From Oopsacas minuta (taxonomy: Eukaryota > Animalia > Porifera), in the NCBI GenBank assembly GCA_024704765.1, contig JAKMXF010000014.1, positions 35,242 through 99,241 on the forward strand: a stretch of DNA of 64,000 nucleotides, in the 5' to 3' direction. Below, one piece after another: positions 30,749 to 40,687 of this stretch; positions within the stretch are counted from its first letter, which is position 1; every line of letters starts with the position of its first letter. The notes under the pieces are model-generated. The model was not told the DNA's origin and searched no databases. It worked only from the letters and a program-made list of their open reading frames with translations. The translations under genes were made by a program, and so were the position numbers.

Positions 30749-32017
30749 ATGGCTAATGCAGAAGTTGATTTGAATTTCATAGCTCAGATAAAAGAGAGTA
30801 GAAAGAAGATTAGAGACTGCTTCAAGAAGTCGCATGAAGCTCTCAGACTCAGATAGAGTATCCTCCTCTCACGTATTGATCAAATCGAGAAAAATTATAA
30901 TAGCAAAACTCAAGAGATGAATTCATTGGTCGAAGCTTTGAACAAAGAAATGGCACAAACTACAGAGACTCTCTCCGCTAATAAACTCACTGACGTTCAA
31001 CAAATAATTCAATCAGCTATTGAAAAGAAGATAACAGAACTAACAGCTGAGACAGACAGTAGCATTGAGTTTGAATGGAACAATCAATTCGAGACTGACA
31101 TAGAACAGTTAGGGAGTATTAAGCTTAACAATCAGATTAACACATCTCGCACCAGCACCTTCCCTCCTCAAGTGAAGCCTGCTGTACCTGATTACAAGGC
31201 TAAACAGCTGCCTACTGCTTACTGCTGTAAGTATTCAGAGAACAAAGCTCCAAGAGAACTGAACGGTCCCAGAGGTATAGCAGTACATTACCAAACTGGA
31301 AATATTTACATAGCTGATCTGTTTAACCATCGTGTACAAGTATTTACCAGTAACGGAGACTATCTCTTCATGTTCAGTGGGAAGATGAACCGGCCAGTAG
31401 GTATCTGTATATCTCAGAATAAAGTGTTTGTTACACAATGGAGTGGTCATTGCATTAATAAGTACGAGCTAGAAGGGAAACTAATCAAGAGTGTTGGTAG
31501 TAAAGGTTATGGAGAAGTTCAGTTGTACGGTCCACATGGACTAGATGTCTCTGATAGAAATAGCAATGTGTACGTCTGTGATTTGAATAATAACAGAGTT
31601 CAAATCTTAACTCAAGAACTCAATCTCCATTCCATGCTAGGGATAGATTTGTTTAAGAATCCATGTGATGTTAAGGTTACAAGAGACAGAGTATTGGTGC
31701 TAGATAGGAGTGATCCGTGTATGTTTGTGTTCAATTCGGATCACGTTCTAACCAACAGACTGATAACTAGAGGTGATGGCAAACAAACAAACGTGCCATT
31801 TTGTTTCGACATAGACAGAGATTATAACATCATTATGAGTGACTCCAGTAATCACTGTGTGTACGTATTCAATCATGAGGGAGAACAGATACACAAGTTT
31901 GGGAAGGAAGGACAGAGTATCGGAGAGTTCTATTACCCATTTGGAATAGCACTAGACAACACAGGACACATTATAGTTGTGTGTCAGAAGAATACTAATT
32001 GTCTACAATTCTTTTGA
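30749..32017 (+). pseudogene. Coiled-coil + NHL paralog C with a premature stop at codon 36
   Basis: ATG at 30749 (MANAEVDL); TAG at 30854-30856 where paralogs have GAG; the frame is otherwise open to 32017 and the same length as paralogs A and D; in-frame ATG at 30917. Confidence 0.8.
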
Positions 32018-33057
32018 ACTTATCTTGCATACATTCATTCATAGCTAATATTTTCTTTATACAATTCGTATATAACTTTTATTCTTATTCTATTTCCTTA
32101 TAACCTTTTACAACTATCTTCTTATACAGAGTTGCCTGTCACGCCAAATATTTCTGGGCTTAATGTGGTTCGGCTGGGCCACTTTTGGGCGCCTGAGCCT
32201 GCCCCCCACTTCCCCCTTTAGCTAGCCAAATTTGTTCTACCAGACCAGATTTAGCTTGAATCGGTCCGCGTAAATGTGTTGCTAAGTGTGCAAGGGGAAA
32301 CACTCGGAGAAACAGGGTTTCCTAGGGAATGATGTTTCCCTAAACATCATTCACTAGTAAATAATGTTCGGGGAACAGAATTACCTCTGACACTGGTACC
32401 CAAAAGTAACTTTGGGGAAAGGTAATATTACATAATTTATAAATATTAAAGACACTCGGGGATTTTATAGTTACGCTTAGTAATTGTGAACATAAGTGAC
32501 ATTTTCAAATGGCTAACTAATCTATTTTAATCCCATAAATCTAAATAATATCTAAAATAAACAGAACCACGTATATATATATTGATTATGTAATCAAACT
32601 GGAAGGAATTTATTTGTGGTCAAATACAAACAATAATGATAAATTCGATGGTTGCTGTAAAAGCATTCATATAATTGAATATATTCAGTAGCAATGCAAA
32701 GGGTGTGAAATATGATTAATCATATGATAAATCATTTTGATATAGATTGTAAAATGTCTAAATTGAATTCTACATGCTCGATTACCCCTTACTAGCAGTT
32801 AACTCATGTACGATCGCGTTTCTTGATTTTTGACAGGTTAGTTGCATTTTTTTGCAGATTTCGAATTTTACTACCAAATTATTTACTTTTTATGATATTT
32901 CTATATAAATGTAAGGAATTATATATCAATTGGAAGTTTTGGCCTGTACTAGAATATACTCATACTCTCTAGAAAAATCTCAGAATATTCTACGCTACTC
33001 ATTCAAATAGTTTTCGCACACAAGTGTAACAAATTTGAGTTGTTTGTGCAATTATCC

Positions 33058-33240
33058 AATACGAGCCGCTTCACTTGCTCGCGCTGTGTGGCTTGCGAAC
33101 ATTTTGTGTCCACATGGGACTCGGCACTTTGTGCCTCGAAATGGCAAAGTATAAATTTACAAAATGAATGAATTAATATATATTTCCACAATTTGTTTAC
33201 TTTATATTCATATAAAGTAAACAAAATACAAATTAACATT
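33058..33240 (+). mobile_element. Fragment of the dispersed Helitron/Helentron-like family
   Basis: acgagccgcttcacttgctc...gtgtccaca matches the reverse complement of 12740-12825; shares ttgtttactttatattcat with other copies. Confidence 0.5.
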
Positions 33241-33429
33241 TTTATGCCAAACTCAATCTATGTTAATGAAAAGTTCCACACAAATTCAACCTCTTAATAA
33301 ACTCAATAATATCATAAAGAAAATAGAATAACAAATGGCTGAGGTGTATACAGATTAGGAAGAAGCCATGGAAAGTGGGGCGGCTATGCCCTGCGTGTAT
33401 ATATTATAGATAATTGATATGCTACTTAG

Positions 33430-34791
33430 TCATGAAGGAGGAAAAAGTTTGGTGTAGACCTTCTTGAACGATTTTCTCAGCATCAGGATTGTACCATCTG
33501 GAAAAGTCAATAGTAACTCAGGAAGCAGACCACACCTCGACAATATATTCTGCACAACGAATAGAAAACTAGGTATATGATCTTCATAACTTCCAATCGA
33601 ATTACAATATTTGTCCTCAAGCGAGGTAATATTGGGAAATTTCGGAAAAATATCTTTGCATAAAATGTAATCGATCACTTTTCGAATCCAAGAATCGTGA
33701 ACAATAGCAGACCAGCCTAAAATGCTCCAATTCACGAATGTGAGAGGTATTATTATAATTGTGAAACAAATCAAGCGTTTTTCAAGATTACTCAACTTCA
33801 CTTTTTGCATAAAATGTTTGCGAAAACCAAGTGTTCTGTAATGCACAAGTAACAGGGTTAAAATTCCCATTGTAAACCCCATAGCGCCAGAAAGAAGTTC
33901 TAATATGGCATACGCTTGTAAGAAAACTTGATCGACTTCAGTATCAACAGAAATAAACTGTCTTTTATAAATAAAATATACCATTTGAGGCTGTTCGATC
34001 AATGTAAGGATTGGTATTATTCCTGAAAATATACAACAAATGACTATTTCCACTAACACGATTGTTATTTTAGTTTTTTTGCTGCTTCCTTTCATTAATC
34101 GTATTGGAAAGATGATAACAAGCATAATATTAAACAGACAAATGGACAGCATCGGTAAATTGAAAAGTACAACCGTTGTGAGCAATGTATTATACGCCAA
34201 ACCTCTATCTTTATATAGTATAGACACCTGTAGAATATTCAAGTCATCACGACCATTTGCGAAAAAGTATTTGGGTGGAAGCAAATCAGATAAAGTTAGA
34301 GATAAAGCAAGGCAAGTGATGGAGCATACCAAAAAGAAAATACAAATCCGGACGAAAGATGTATAAGCCTTTGTAATTATCCAAAACACTAGGTTAATAA
34401 TACTTAACAAACAGGTGAAACAGGAAAGTATCGATAGTAAGACTTGCTCAATAGTTTTACAAATCTCACCACATGGATGCCAATTAAACGGCATAATACA
34501 TAAAGACCCATAACTAATGTTATTGACTACACAACCAGGAATATATTGCGCTACTTCATCCAAAATCATAGTAGTTTGTCTGTCACGGATAGTTGAGTTT
34601 GCGTTTTCCGGCACTTGTACTTGGATAACATAAAGCGAGCGAATTCCGATAGCAAATATCCAATAAGCAACAAGAACTACAACAGATAAAACAGTGTAAA
34701 TAACTGTTTTAAATTTCAAAGGTATATTTAATCGTTTCCGAAAAATCACCGTTGAATTAATACAAAAATTTTTTCTACCAAAAGTAGTCAT
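33430..34791 (-). CDS. Frizzled/Smoothened-like (class F) 7TM protein lacking the cysteine-rich Wnt-binding domain, single exon
   Basis: First ATG at 34791; N-terminal hydrophobic segment, short Cys-containing linker, seven further hydrophobic helices; KLSNLEKRLICF resembles Fzd KLEKLM.RIGVF; SWIRKVIDYILC...C...PS resembles Smo EWERSFRDYVLC...C...PS. Confidence 0.6.
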   Translation of the reverse strand: MTTFGRKNFCINSTVIFRKRLNIPLKFKTVIYTVLSVVVLVAYWIFAIGIRSLYVIQVQVPENANSTIRDRQTTMILDEVAQYIPGCVVNNISYGSLCIMPFNWHPCGEICKTIEQVLLSILSCFTCLLSIINLVFWIITKAYTSFVRICIFFLVCSITCLALSLTLSDLLPPKYFFANGRDDLNILQVSILYKDRGLAYNTLLTTVVLFNLPMLSICLFNIMLVIIFPIRLMKGSSKKTKITIVLVEIVICCIFSGIIPILTLIEQPQMVYFIYKRQFISVDTEVDQVFLQAYAILELLSGAMGFTMGILTLLLVHYRTLGFRKHFMQKVKLSNLEKRLICFTIIIIPLTFVNWSILGWSAIVHDSWIRKVIDYILCKDIFPKFPNITSLEDKYCNSIGSYEDHIPSFLFVVQNILSRCGLLPELLLTFPDGTILMLRKSFKKVYTKLFPPS

Positions 34792-37168
34792 TATCAAAAT
34801 ACAAAATTCAAGTTAGCATAAATCGGGCAAACACACTTTTATAAGTGTTCAATGATTGATATATTCCTATTAAAATTATGTTGTCTATTCAAATGTGTAT
34901 TTGGCGTGAAACCTTCTGATAGCAATGCGTCACTATCGCCAAAAATCTGAATAAAGTGTATTGGAAAATATGGGAAATAATACAAGCCTTACTACTTGTG
35001 TGAATTCGATAAGAATTATAGGAGTGCGGATAATAAAATTTAAACTTAGATAGATAGATTGAATAATGATGTCTTACACCAGCTGTGCTTTATAGGGGCA
35101 CTGGTAAAGCTTGTATCATTTGTTGATTGGGTCAACAGGAATATGCAAAGAGTCTTTAAGTCCCAGTAATCGAGTTAAAATTTCCTGGCGTCACGGGGCC
35201 TTATTTACTAACAAAATTATTGCTTAAAGTTAAGGGAAACTCACAATATTCTAATTAGGTATTATTAACACTAAAGTTTTGCTAAGGTTTGGCAATAGTA
35301 CAGTCGCTTAAGTAGAAAAAGCTGCATGAACATTCATTTTACTCATAACTTCACACTTTCTGAGGTTGTTCCTCAACACAAATCATTCAATTTTGGAAAA
35401 TACAGTGAAAAATCCGTTAGTGAACACCTCTAAACAGCGAAAAAATTTCGGTCCCGAGAGTGATTACTATAGTAAGGTTTGACTGTATATATTGTACTTC
35501 CATGGTAGCAGGAAACGCTCCGGTTGGTTAGGTTAACCAGTCAATATTTGTACTGCTATTAGGAATAATTAGTCAATCGGGCCAATTTGGGGACTCAATA
35601 TATTTTGTATAGGTCAGTCAACCTGACCAATTGAAATCTGCTTAACTCGCTTGACTACAGTAGATTCCGCTATTCTGTTTAGGACGTAGGTCCTGACTTG
35701 GATTTAATACTTTTATCGAATAACTTCAAGCCCTTTCAAAACTTATTCGTTTTCTCGGCTTACAACGACGTACCGTGTATAACGAAATAAAACCTGATTC
35801 CAGAGTACTTTGTTTTAACTTTTAACCAAAGTTGAATTTAATATAATTTGAATTTTGATATTTGAATTCACATCTAGGGAAGAATAATACAATTTAGACT
35901 CTGTAATTAAGAATATTACAGGACCCGCGATACCAGTTCGGTTGCTCCGGTTTAACCGGAGAACTTTCTGGTGCAGTGAGTACTGAGTTACTCTACTTTA
36001 TCACTTTGGATAATGAGTAGAAATTTTAACGATTCTTGCTATCCTTATTGACAATTGTATAGTAAGACATTCCAAAATGTCAATTGGCGCTGTAAGCATG
36101 CTAGCAGACTAATTGTTAATAAATCCTTACCAGTGCTCGACAAATCTGGTGGTTCGATGGCTATAGCCACCAGACTTTTTCCTTAAACCAATAAAAAATC
36201 ATGTAATTTGGCTTTGTTATGCGAAGTGGTAGCTATGTTAGCCACCACAGAATTTCAATTTTGTCGAGGGCTGCTACTTATATACACAGATGTGAAAATC
36301 ATGAGCTATCTAGTGATTCATATTGACACTAATCTAAAAATAGATGTCACAATCATTTTAAAGACTATGTATATACATTTTGATCTCTTCCTTTACTCAT
36401 ACTTGCAAACTGTCCCAATTTTAGGCAGGAATCCATGTTCGGATAAGTGTTGAGGCTATTGTCCCGCCAAAATTTGCAAAGAACTTTAATCGTCCCGCCT
36501 TTTTGTAGTCCTGTCTAATGCAAATATGCTACATACCGCGAGTTCCCGCTATTTTCTGAATAACTATTCATAGAAGTTTTAAGCTGGAAATTTCTTTGAA
36601 ACATGAATTAAGACAAAAATTAAACAAATAATGATTTGTAAAAATCTATAAATAGAATATGTGAATATAGAATTAATCATAAATTAGTTTTAATTTCGTT
36701 TGATTTGGAATTATAATTATTTGGTATTATTCATGTATCAAATAATATCAAAGCTCAGTCAGGGGTAATAACCACGAATTCAGTATACATATTAATTCTG
36801 TACAAATATGAGTCTCAAGGTAGACACTTTGTGTTACTCATGCTGATGAACTGACACTTCTAAGTGCGGGCCAATTGACAAACACTTAGATAAATCCTAG
36901 AGTCAAATACGTATGTAGTAATGTCAAAGCTTAGCCAGCACAGAACTGTTAGTATCAGCATGCACCATGAGTAAGGGTACCAATCATTCGAAAATTGCAT
37001 GTAAATGGAAAAAACATGTGTAATATGTTATTAATTAATGAAAAGAAGTATAAAAATTATAAATATTTGTATAAACTATAAAATGAGAAAATAAGAAAAT
37101 GAAAAATGAGTAATATACTAATTGGATAAAGCAAGATTATAGGAAATACACTCAAAGTAAGGAAAATG

Positions 37169-38368
37169 TTAATATTTCTGGAAACAGCCTTTATCTTCAA
37201 TGCCGCTATTCACACATATAATATTATCTGAGTTATCGAATACAATATCGTATAAGTAAGAGAGATGTCCTCTACCCAGAATATGTTTCATCACTCCTTG
37301 AGGTGAGAAGATACGGATATCGTTAGCAGTACTGTCTGTGATTAAGAAGTTCCCCTTCTTATCAATCGTGAAGAAGAGAGATGCTATCATTGGCTGTTGC
37401 TGTCCAGTCAGCTGTATAATATTCTGGAGAGTATAGTCTCTGTTGTAGCAGTAGATGGAGTTGTTGTTTTGAGATAGGATGTAGATTCTGTCAGAGAATA
37501 CTGTAATGTCTCTTGGAAGTTTGAGTTCTCCGGAGCCGAACTCTTTAATGAAGTTAAGATTAGAATCAAATATTCGAATTCTTTGTATACTACAATCACA
37601 GACATATATTAACCCAGCTTCATGACACAATCCTGAGATAGTTTTAAATCGTCCTGCTGTATTGCCTCTTGAGCCTGTTTCCTTTAGGAATTTTCCTGCT
37701 AGGCTAAACTTCAAAATAGACTCTTTAGCTCTATCAGTAACGAATACTTCCTCTTTCGACAGACATATACCGAATGGCTCCTTCAAGTGGTCAGTCCCAA
37801 AAGAGCGTATATAATTTCCTTCGGTATTCAACACTTGAATACGACTGTTGCCTTTGTCACAAATATACAATTCATTACTTGCTCAATCTACTGCCATTCC
37901 TCGGGGATTATTCAACTCTCCATTTCCATTACCCCTATTACAAACTTTAAGAATAGGGTTTTCCCTCCTCACGTATTCAGGAATGATTTCAAACAAATCT
38001 ATTTCATCCATGGTTTTACGAATTTTATCAGAGTAACAACGGAATTCAATAAATTCCAAGTTATCCACTTTTACCTTTTCAGCCATTTTCATTTCGATGT
38101 TTCTATCTAGTGTTTGTTTCATTATGTCTAGTAATCCTCCTACCAAGTTGCTAGTCATTGTAGTTAGATTTTGATCTTTGCATATTCTTAACTGTTTTAT
38201 TGCTTCCTCCAATTCTACATTCTTGTCGTGTCCTTCCTTCATTTTAGCGAGTCTAGACAGAAGACTATTTCTGCGATCTGACAGATATTGGTAAAGTTCA
38301 TCAAAAGTTCTTATTATTTCCATCTTCAGAGCTTCTAGCTTTTGATCGACATTGAAAACTGCAGCCAT
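37169..38368 (-). pseudogene. Divergent coiled-coil + NHL gene interrupted by one in-frame TGA
   Basis: ORF-track entries 37883-38368 and 37169-37870 are in the same frame: RGMAVD*ASNELYICDKGNSRIQV (TGA at 37885-37883); NHL motifs continue on both sides. Confidence 0.75.
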
Positions 38369-40687
38369 TTCTGTTCTAGAAATTCAAAATATTTGTGTGT
38401 ATATTTCTTGGGAAAATTATAAAATATGTCCAGCTAGCTGTCATTTCATTATTCGTACAATTTGTTTTCATTAAAACACGAATTAAACAACTTAGTTAAT
38501 AACCAAAACGTATGAAAATTCTTAGCAAATGCACTTGGAAGCAGGATGATGTAATCAGGCTTGTATCCAGGAGCGAAATTATAAAAAATTGTGTAGTTAA
38601 GAGCAAGAATATTTTGGGAGTTAGGCGCATGTCACACGCCAATTTTGGCCAATAATGTAATAATGGTAACAATCATAAAAGTCAATTGAAATGTATTATT
38701 GTTTATGAGATTAATCAGTTGAATTCATTAATATTGTAAAATTATTCAAAAGGTAAACTGTGTATAATTACAGGGAGGAAGCTTGATAAATGATAAGTAG
38801 GTTGAGTCCTAATACTACTGGTATTACACCTCTGGAATGTAGTATTAACCGTAGAATATGTAATGGATGTATGGTTTGATTAAAATTGAACTTTGATGTT
38901 TCCAAAATTCAAATAGTCTAGGCGCGTAAGTGAAATCGAGAACTCATTTAGACGCGCTACATATAAAACCTGGAAGAACCCTGGATGAATATCCAAGTGA
39001 CAAGCCTAAGATATACGATGTTTGTATTTACGTATGTAATATCAAATTATCAAGTGTGAATTAATTAAGTAATTAAATACAAAATTACAAACAATCAAAG
39101 GTAACAAACTCACGAAAAATATGTTGTTGATATCAACTTTTGCAATTTGTTGTTGTTGATAGTGTTGAAATGTTGTTGCGTTGTTGATTGATAATATATC
39201 GTGTGAATTATCAAATCATCTACAGACTATATCTTAGCTATGTGGTTATACAATAATACTTTCACTATCATATTTCAATTCATTTACTGTGTTGATTACT
39301 ATTACTTGTATAGTGGCTCAGTTCTAACAGAACTTTGTACACTCAATGCCGGTTATAAGAACATCGCCGGGAACTGGACATAATGTTCTTATATCCGATA
39401 AAATTCAATGGAGTAAGATACAAAAGATTCGGTAAATCGAGTTATGGTTCGTATAACCGGTGTTCTGTATATTTGGTTGTTTTTGCACTTTTAAATATTT
39501 GTGTTGAGTCTATTGTGCTATTCAACACGGGTATGTTCAGGGATAGCGGTAAGTGAATTTCAAACCACAAAATAGCTCTTTTACAGATATAATTAAATCC
39601 AAATTGAAATCAGTAAGTATGCAGAATTGTAGATAATGTACGTAGCTTTCTTTTGATTATGAATAATGTAAATAATTCATAAGTGGATTACTTTTCAAAT
39701 ATTTCCTGAATTATTCACATTTTCTTCACAAAATTATGAAGTCGAAAAGTTCTACAATTCCACTCTATAAGCTATTTATTCTAGAAAAACAACTTCTAAC
39801 ACAGTTTCTGGCATAGAATTAGCATTACAAATTGAAAGATTTGTAAATCATTGTAGGCTCGATTAATCATAAAAAACCAAACTAGCTGAAAAATGGAGAA
39901 ATAAATATATTTTGAATAATTAATGAATGAATTAACAGTTAAAACATTGAGATGAGAATCTATATTTCGTGTGTGAGATAGGTCTAAGATGTATTGAATT
40001 TCAACAAATACGCTACACATCCTCTCTTATACGGACAGTTCCGACTGAAAGGTACCCTGAACTTAGAATATGCCAAATCTAATAAATTACCATAACTCAA
40101 TTGTAGTCACAACTCATGCGTTTCTATCAAAATTATAATTGTCCTTGTGAATTGCTTAAGTTGATCGAGATATGTTGAATTAATTTTGGACTGACACAAA
40201 AGGTGCCATCTTGAGGGAGAAGCCCGGACCTTGTAGACTAGATCTCCGATGTTCGACTGTAATTTTAACCAAAAGGGAGAACTTCCAGTAGAAGATGGAG
40301 AGTTTAACATAAATGTTTATTTATTATTCGTATAACTTATTTTCTAATTCCTTTTAAATGAACTAATATTTCCCCAAAAACACGAGTAATTCTTGACAAT
40401 ATTTTATCCTGAGAGTTTGAGCAAGTTCTATCCTCTAATTTACTCAAAATGAAATACTTTCATAAACAACAATGAAAATGAAATTAGACTTTCTAGTTAT
40501 TACAAGAAATACGAAATATAAATAAGCATTTTAGTATAATATTGAAACCGAAATCTAAATAAAAAGTAATTAAAAGAATTATAAGCAATAATATTTATAC
40601 TATACTCATCTACGTATGGATACAACCCACTATCTCACCAGTATATATAGCAGATTATTGACAGTGAAGTATATACAGCACAATTAA

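Follow-up and report, generated by a model that had tools for sequence, protein, structure and literature searches.

The gene and its predicted product

We analysed a stretch of 64,000 nucleotides (nt) from the glass sponge Oopsacas minuta (hereafter the window; contig JAKMXF010000014.1, positions 35,242 to 99,241 of the forward strand; G+C content about 35%). At window positions 33430-34791, the minus strand carries an open reading frame (ORF) of 453 amino acids (aa), starting from an ATG at 34791, that a preliminary description made from the letters alone had read as a Frizzled/Smoothened-like (class F) seven-transmembrane (7TM) receptor. An in-frame stop lies 7 codons 5' of this ATG and several further stops lie within the preceding 150 nt; thus, no in-frame N-terminal extension of the ORF is possible. 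We consider the product likely to be a functional eight-helix, class F-derived, receptor-like protein in which an N-terminal anchor helix (TM0), predicted to stay uncleaved, and a miniature ectodomain whose linker bears two to four cysteines replace the signal peptide and the cysteine-rich domain (CRD). The features of the gene and its predicted product are as follows (TM, transmembrane helix; ECL and ICL, extracellular and intracellular loop; AF2, AlphaFold2; pLDDT, predicted local distance difference test; dN/dS, ratio of non-synonymous to synonymous substitution rates).

33430..34791 (-): complete single-exon coding sequence (CDS), 453 aa plus stop; upstream in-frame stop; dN/dS about 0.1 against the orthologue in L048
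34720..34791 (-): basic N-terminal tail, residues 1-24, predicted to be cytoplasmic (from the sequence; low pLDDT)
34621..34719 (-): TM0 anchor helix, residues 25-57, with W44 (AF2 helix, pLDDT 91-96)
34468..34620 (-): ectodomain, residues 58-108 (about 50 aa), with a helix at 68-81, sequons N65 and N91 and class F-type linker cysteines 87, 98, 107 and 111 (sequence and AF2)
33508..34467 (-): seven-helix core, residues 109-428 (AF2, VIA-align and hhalign)
Within the core (-): TM1 109-140, TM2 146-170, TM3 194-227 and TM4 238-266 with the conserved E248 (AF2)
Within the core, continued (-): ECL2 hairpin 270-281, TM5 284-327, TM6 335-384 and TM7 409-428 (AF2)
33772..33786 (-): L-E-K-R-L motif at the ICL3/TM6 junction, residues 336-340 (family conservation)
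33604..33660 (-): top of the TM6 extension and ECL3, with the C378/C396 pair and sequon N387 (paralogue co-loss; alignment to Balamuthia)
33433..33507 (-): helix 8 and short tail, residues 429-453, without KTxxxW, Trp or a recognisable PDZ ligand (AF2 helix 434-449)

The layout recurs in the paralogues described below. All 23 aligned family members begin with a tail and TM0; tail length differs from one paralogue to another and reaches about 200 aa. Residues 27-58 of the target are strongly hydrophobic (Kyte-Doolittle 2.5), and TM0 aligns with coral and demosponge-type relatives in profile-profile comparison by hhalign (from column 30 and column 37, respectively). The family alignments of 12 and 23 sequences show conservation of W44, C98, E248, E337 and R339; the last two are invariant in the former, and W44 and R339 are at least 90% conserved in the latter. 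The protein contains 17 cysteines, and its three sequons (N65, N91 and N387) all fall in predicted extracellular parts. Its tail ends in ...RKSFKKVYTKLFPPS (read as KKVYTKLFPPS in the preliminary description); no Trp follows residue 368, and inspection of the tail (...LRKSFKKVYTKLFPPS) found no KTxxxW, the Dishevelled motif. A Pfam search of the protein found no Fz domain (PF01392), and no Fz-coding stretch was found on its contig, the only Fz matches in the genome being the FzdB gene on contig C11 and a weak one on C22. Together with the stops 5' of the ATG, these results confirmed the earlier reading of a receptor without CRD; the N-terminal hydrophobic anchor, the short ectodomain and the absence of KTxxxW, all proposed at the same time, were borne out as well.

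Orthologue-grade proteins 59-62% identical to the target were present in ENA assemblies, with two tandem copies on one contig. Between the target and these orthologues, dN was 0.28 and dS was saturated, giving a dN/dS of at most about 0.1, and between the two tandem copies dN/dS was 0.27; the gene is therefore under purifying selection. Judged from the sequence, the ORF is a functional, intron-free gene of O. minuta, with its integrity and constraint both shown. We also considered that it might instead be a decaying or non-expressed duplicate in a pseudogene-rich family, which we regard as extremely improbable. Both of its closest genomic copies are dead (that on C317 lacks the first 446 nt and that on C44 has 8 stops), the exact protein is missing from a 15-billion-protein collection (where paralogues are annotated "hypothetical") and is apparently unannotated in its present form, and variants within the sample stood at 7 non-synonymous to 5 synonymous. 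However, the frame runs uninterrupted over its full length and keeps every family motif, the low dN/dS holds against intact orthologues, which are tandem genes in another assembly, and the 7:5 ratio is still under the neutral expectation of about 3.4:1 and is perhaps inflated by reads from the C317 copy.

The two copies differ in extent. The C44 copy (L003, G000:C44:789409-790742) is a pseudogene of the target clade with 80% DNA identity over the whole CDS and 8 in-frame stops. The C317 copy (C317:338782-343964; L002, L064) belongs to a segmental duplicate of about 6.3 kb corresponding to window 32071-38398, which is 94-97% identical and takes in both the receptor and the NHL-repeat gene next to it; here, a 1.27-kb deletion (window 34346-35618) took the first 446 nt of the receptor CDS and its upstream region. 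A further copy of window 37034-39460, at 92% identity, lies at C317:326830-329265 (L063). In the window, the target is flanked by ORFs at 30917-32017 (+) and 37169-38368 (-), which by eye resemble NHL-repeat (TRIM-NHL-like) beta-propeller genes. The upstream neighbour apparently falls into two pieces, one coiled-coil and one with the repeats, and the same gene type was co-duplicated on C317. An apparent joint (34342->35619) in contigs assembled from public runs was considered as an intron and rejected; it is the deletion boundary of the C317 copy. One contig of run X4 showed a 1-nt insertion at window 33447 (depth 148 of 468), six codons ahead of the stop codon; this may be a C-terminal frameshift variant or come from reads of the C317 copy.

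Kinship with the Frizzled/Smoothened class

We searched the O. minuta assembly (61.46 Mb, 365 contigs; the target lies on C14) first with the target and then with a 12-sequence profile. The profile search returned about 21 full-length single-ORF paralogue loci of 440-640 aa and at least 5 fragments or pseudogenes besides, with several paralogues in tandem or inverted pairs (on C255, C277, C33 and C354). Mean pairwise identity among the paralogues was 14-27% by region, and the divergence was spread over the whole protein, with no pocket singled out. None of the 18 paralogue ORFs scanned passed any Pfam gathering threshold; the best, L029, scored 18.5 bits against the Frizzled membrane domain (PF01534; E 1.3e-3, cut-off 22.3). 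The two clear PF01534 genes of the genome, FzdB on C11 and a CRD-less gene on C302, were not recovered by the family profile at E <= 0.01.

A 23-sequence family profile gave 287 matches at E <= 1e-3 among 1.84 billion representatives. After a tier of hexactinellid-type proteins came three proteins of Oscarella pearsei, the best of which (P0062, 3.6e-30) matched both Pfam Frizzled (35 bits) and Fz (30 bits). Further matches included Amphimedon XP_019850181, annotated "FZ domain-containing protein" (9e-26), a Corticium protein, OS493_016095 of the coral Desmophyllum pertusum (2.8e-25), one Diphylleia protein and many Balamuthia mandrillaris proteins annotated Frizzled-9/10 or "Fz Smo" (1e-16 to 1e-8). 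In these matches, Pfam recognised Frizzled membrane regions at 33-88 bits (56-88 bits for the Balamuthia "Frizzled-9/10" proteins), plus Fz domains. Against PDB sequences, 11 of the 12 matches to the same profile were Frizzled chains (best E 0.002). A 71-sequence profile of the wider clade matched FZD3 (4e-16), FZD6 (2e-13), FZD4 (6e-11), FZD1 (7e-10) and SMO (6e-9), followed by adhesion receptors (2e-5) and rhodopsin (1e-4). Class F homology, as first proposed, thus holds at the level of the family profile, and these searches did return class F matches. The proposal that the protein is most like Smoothened did not survive: FZD3, FZD6, FZD4 and FZD1 outrank SMO in the profile search, the TM6-ECL3 segment alone (residues 330-400) found no SMO match in the PDB by phmmer, and FZD and SMO are tied by structure.

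Comparisons by hhalign matched the family to FzdB orthologues plus Balamuthia with Prob 98.9 and E 9.8e-18, and to Balamuthia plus Diphylleia alone with E 2.6e-21 over 335 columns, from the linker to TM7. As a control, we used a 7tm_2 alignment built from nine adhesion G-protein-coupled receptors (GPCRs) of the same genome, which the family matched with Prob 96.3 and E 1.7e-9 over 160 columns (TM3-TM6). This match, together with the 4 of 71 wider-clade members that pass or approach the Pfam 7tm_2 model and the UniRef label "GPCR family 2 profile 2" on relatives, could be taken to mean that the family arose from the adhesion/secretin receptors (class B, 7tm_2), or is their sister group, and that its Frizzled signal reflects general kinship between classes. 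We consider such an origin very unlikely. The 7tm_2 match covers those 160 columns only and equals the background that genuine class F groups reach against the same control (Balamuthia 4e-12, FzdB 1.5e-7), whereas class F-type groups score at least 12 orders better, over 335 columns that include the linker, ECL3 and TM7. FZD and SMO stand 4-11 orders above adhesion receptors in the PDB ranking, 7 of the 71 members match Frizzled against the 4 for 7tm_2, and the nearest relatives among sponges have Fz domains instead of GAIN/GPS. The target itself gave no match to PF00002 in the Pfam search. By profile methods, the 7TM core is closer to class F than to other GPCR classes (Balamuthia 2.6e-21 versus 7tm_2 1.7e-9).

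The individual hallmarks of class F are partly kept and partly lost. The linker retains the "CP...C.P.C" cysteines, and hhalign aligned it with the Frizzled-type linker. We read disulfides from cysteine co-variation across paralogues, taking co-losses as pairs because the partners of a disulfide are expected to vanish together. The family consensus has the cysteines for both a linker-linker and a linker-ECL1 disulfide. Linker Cys3 and the ECL1 cysteine were co-lost three times independently (in the target clade, L005 and L038/39); in the target, F replaces the former and A178 the latter. The ECL3 pair (C378/C396) was co-lost in L009, L010, L012 and L029, and its two members align with the two ECL3 cysteines of the Balamuthia Frizzled-like proteins. 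The cysteines at the top of TM3 and in ECL2 occur together only in L037 and L040 and are absent from the target and the rest of the family. These co-losses match the disulfide map of SMO and FZD structures, and we predict that they recover the linker-ECL1, TM3-ECL2 and ECL3 disulfides of class F. For the target, the predicted disulfides are C87-C98 and C378-C396. The target has the extended TM6 (335-384) together with the ECL3 cysteine pair that mark class F. In the profile alignment, R339 falls on the R of FZD6 "FMIRIGVFS", which mutagenesis primers identify as R416(6.32) (PMC6368630). This R6.32 equivalent is kept and W7.55 is absent, with no Trp in TM7 or helix 8. In all, the target has lost the CRD, KTxxxW, W7.55 and the TM3-ECL2 bridge and, in its own clade, the linker-ECL1 bridge too; new features are TM0 with its conserved W44 and the conserved TM4 glutamate E248. 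The class F-like linker cysteines, TM6 and cysteine-bearing ECL3 pointed out in the preliminary description therefore go beyond chance resemblance, given the hhalign scores (9.8e-18 and 2.6e-21) and the cysteine co-variation.

AF2 modelling, which had been suggested along with Foldseek, gave a pLDDT of 70 with 12 sequences and of 89.8 (predicted TM-score 0.88) with 71 sequences. The model has eight membrane helices, with TM6 unbroken over 50 residues. A VIA-align search with the better model against 48,161 PDB representatives ranked FZD1 best (Z 20.8 over 334 residues), with CB2 (Z 19.8 over 282 residues) and SMO (19.3 over 327) within the tie margin of FZD1. With the first model, the top 22 entries were all class F (SMO Z 20.5; FZD3/7/4/6/1 18.7-19.9; 307-339 residues), and the best class A entry reached Z 18.3 over 267 residues. 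Foldseek E-values failed to separate the GPCR classes; aligned length and TM-score alone leaned towards class F. The structural check thus confirmed a GPCR fold, with class left undecided by Foldseek and FZD1 best by VIA-align. The modelled structure establishes the fold, and its linker, long TM6 and ECL3 point towards class F without deciding the class on their own.

Several observations weigh against a functional class F-derived receptor. Searched alone, the target drew neither a Pfam family at E <= 10 nor a PDB sequence, and hhalign between the family and FzdB orthologues alone was weak (E 4.9e-5), below its score against the adhesion 7tm_2 proteins of the same genome (1.7e-9); a 12-sequence profile found no match to the single FzdB sequence. 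Several hallmarks of class F are absent, and TM7 fails to align with that of canonical Frizzled. The structure search leaves class F and lipid-type class A receptors unseparated (Z 20.8 versus 19.8), and the ESM Atlas, by features and by fold, placed the protein with nematode serpentine and class A chemoreceptor clusters. The four public runs with the target locus consist of DNA-like contigs from one sample, with no RNA evidence among them. We rejected the blank single-protein search as proof of no homology, because a family profile is required to reveal the link: the search against the Frizzled/Smoothened membrane domain that had been proposed earlier drew nothing with the single protein and strong matches with the paralogue profile. 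We likewise read the class A affinity in the ESM Atlas as generic 7TM shape and AT-rich composition, no sequence-profile method favouring class A (rhodopsin 1e-4 versus FZD 4e-16). Because direct similarity to FzdB orthologues is weak, class F membership rests on transitive, family-level evidence, the link running via the more diverse amoebozoan and sponge Fz-domain proteins. Judged by these comparisons, the 7TM core of the target is a very divergent descendant of the Frizzled/Smoothened lineage.

The hexactinellid family and its wider clade

We built a quick IQ-TREE phylogeny (LG+C20 with posterior mean site frequencies) of 59 rows; its root was not inferred, several branches are long, and human FZD/SMO and Dictyostelium sequences were not included. 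A split with a support of 99 in the approximate likelihood-ratio test (SH-aLRT) separated FzdB, the C302 gene and the amoebozoan/Diphylleia Frizzled-likes from a 40-row clade. This clade comprised homoscleromorph Fz-domain proteins, an Amphimedon-containing group, a Desmophyllum-containing group and the hexactinellid family, which was itself monophyletic (SH-aLRT 98). The target grouped with its three ENA orthologues (100), adjoining L005 and L006. Of the phylogeny envisaged in the preliminary description, the separation from FzdB and amoebozoan Frizzled-likes was thus obtained (99), in a tree without human Fzd/Smo and Dictyostelium Fsl/Fsc. On this sampling, the target lies within a monophyletic hexactinellid expansion (about 20 genes, with tandem pairs and pseudogenes) inside a wider, unnamed sponge and cnidarian Frizzled-like clade. 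The idea of a lineage-specific family stood in part: there is a multigene family of about 21 full-length loci, and it is not strictly lineage-restricted, with relatives in Oscarella, Corticium, Amphimedon and the coral Desmophyllum.

By hhalign, the family aligned with the coral group and with a group of Logan transcripts from TM0 onward (E about 2e-31). The TM0 layout therefore predates hexactinellids or arose more than once. The coral gene OS493_016095 is a multi-exon gene (7.5 kb for 596 aa) on a 2.5-Mb scaffold, and thus not sponge contamination. The target shows the full layout of this sponge and cnidarian TM0-anchored Frizzled-like family: a tail, TM0 with its Trp, a cysteine linker and a 7TM core with the TM4 Glu and LEKR. 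Some members of the wider clade still have an Fz domain. A CRD is present in canonical Frizzleds, in the amoebozoan proteins and in the sponge Fz-domain relatives alike, so its loss is the derived state.

Within the hexactinellid family, L037 (C354:752781-754061) and L040 (C354:745193-746392), the sole paralogues with both the TM3-top and the ECL2 cysteine, branch near the base and resemble a transitional stage from canonical class F to the derived family.

Two other loci of the genome matched PF01534. LOD99_4979, in the C302:327976-328974 region (L016:1306-2751, minus strand), encodes 481 aa with a PF01534 score of 121.6 bits; it has a signal-peptide-like start and about 85 aa ahead of TM1, without an Fz domain in the single ORF, and orthologues with 65-82% identity occur in other assemblies. 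L017 (C3:15038-15514) is a 1681-aa open frame that scores 26 bits against PF01534 and 62.6 bits against 7tm_2; we take it for a probable adhesion GPCR, with a 7TM region that the Frizzled model also picks up.

We searched the literature for a Frizzled-like family in hexactinellids and found none. FzdB alone is listed in the genome and Wnt papers on O. minuta (PMC10280926, PMC5684314), a 2025 GPCR survey that includes O. minuta used Pfam-type hidden Markov models for Frizzled, and divergent "Frizzled-like" models have been noted in Amphimedon (PMC4302439).

Proposed signalling without Wnt and comparison with known systems

The O. minuta genome has been reported to contain no wnt, wntless or dishevelled (PMC10280926, PMC5684314) and to contain eight G-alpha genes (PMC10280926), and its FzdB is without a proper KTxxxW (PMC5684314). 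Because the genome is reported to lack these three genes, and with KTxxxW absent from the target, the proposal of a Wnt- and Dishevelled-independent class F receptor is supported. With a probability just short of even, we infer that the protein is a cell-surface receptor for a non-Wnt ligand that signals via heterotrimeric G proteins. The ligand would bind either the 7TM/ECL pocket or the small tethered ectodomain. Since the ectodomain has only about 50 residues and is tethered at both ends, the 7TM/ECL cavity is predicted as the most likely binding site, and it would suit a small or lipidic ligand. The signal would then pass through heterotrimeric G proteins rather than Dishevelled. In FZD6, breaking either partner of the R6.32-W7.55 pair raises G-protein coupling and abolishes DVL signalling (PMC6368630). 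The target may be primed for G-protein coupling, because the Trp partner of this lock is gone and the Arg is kept; such a half-dismantled lock may favour G-protein-competent or constitutively active states.

The same losses admit another reading, in which the protein is class F-derived but not coupled to G proteins and serves instead in lipid or sterol handling, as a scaffold or as a receptor with an unnamed partner at TM0 or helix 8. SMO has a sterol tunnel; W7.55, KTxxxW and the TM3-ECL2 disulfide have been lost; and the extra conserved helix (W44) and the buried conserved E248 suggest a new intramembrane interface. However, the features most strongly conserved on the intracellular side are R6.32 and LEKR, where TM6 faces the G protein, birth-and-death dynamics (tandem pairs and pseudogenes) are typical of ligand-diversifying receptors, and the model shows a complete GPCR fold with helix 8. 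We judge a role outside G-protein signalling unlikely. A broader version of the G-protein-coupled receptor reading is conceivable but doubtful: TM0-anchored, CRD-less class F proteins would form an ancient sponge and cnidarian family overlooked by standard domain searches, which expanded in the Wnt- and Dishevelled-less glass sponges into their main class F-type system. Its members would act as G-protein-biased lipid or small-molecule sensors, possibly constitutively primed through the loss of W7.55 alongside a retained R6.32, with TM0 as a built-in co-receptor or tether for the miniature ectodomain.

Glass sponges are the textbook example of an animal body plan without Wnt, Wntless and Dishevelled, with FzdB as the single inventoried Frizzled and a possible remnant. 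The O. minuta genome holds about 20 further divergent Frizzled-class 7TM genes and one more PF01534 gene, none of which has a Wnt-binding domain or a Dishevelled motif; this alters the picture of the fate of class F signalling upon Wnt loss. The family offers a natural experiment on which parts of class F are independent of Wnt, with R6.32, the linker and the ECL3 staple kept and the CRD, KTxxxW and W7.55 dispensable. It also defines an unannotated receptor family of sponges and corals that would go uncounted where GPCR surveys rely on Pfam thresholds, and a putative class F offshoot with a new N-terminal architecture (TM0), of relevance to sponge evo-devo and GPCR evolution.

Compared with canonical Frizzled and Smoothened, the family shares a homologous 7TM core, the "CP...C.P.C" linker and the inferred linker-ECL1/ECL3 disulfide pattern, as well as a very long protruding TM6, the ECL2 hairpin and the basic switch residue R6.32. 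By contrast, the target has an N-terminal anchor helix instead of a CRD or signal peptide and lacks KTxxxW and W7.55; the TM3-ECL2 disulfide is lost in most family members and the linker-ECL1 pair in the target clade, TM7 is unalignable, and the target lies below Pfam detection. With respect to O. minuta FzdB, it stands on the opposite side of the split supported at 99%. LOD99_4979 shares with the target its genome, a class F 7TM core and the absence of an Fz domain in the single ORF, but it passes PF01534, has a signal-peptide-like N-terminus and groups with FzdB, and it is no more than a distant relative of the target family (hhalign 1.5e-7).

Class F expansions without CRD and KTxxxW are known from Dictyostelium (FscA-J; PMC10445921). 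Like the Dictyostelium Fsc and amoebozoan Fsl proteins, the hexactinellid family is a lineage-specific expansion of divergent class F-like 7TM proteins with repeated loss of CRD and KTxxxW, and Fsl members, likewise, often fall below Pfam thresholds (PMC10445921). The Balamuthia Frizzled-likes are its best-scoring named class F relatives outside animals (E 2.6e-21). Unlike the amoebozoan Fsl/Fsc proteins, the target clade is on the animal side, with sponge and coral proteins, and has TM0; in our tree, which had Balamuthia but no Dictyostelium, the sponge and coral clade was split from Balamuthia plus Diphylleia at 99, outside an amoebozoan clade. The closest relatives are the sponge "FZ domain-containing" proteins and coral OS493_016095 (hhalign 6.6e-30 to 2.5e-31), in the same clade supported at 99%. 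The Oscarella and Amphimedon relatives differ in keeping an Fz domain in place of TM0, and the coral gene has introns, unlike the single-exon genes of the glass sponge. The layout of TM0, linker and 7TM core seen in the target recurs in the coral and Logan transcript groups.

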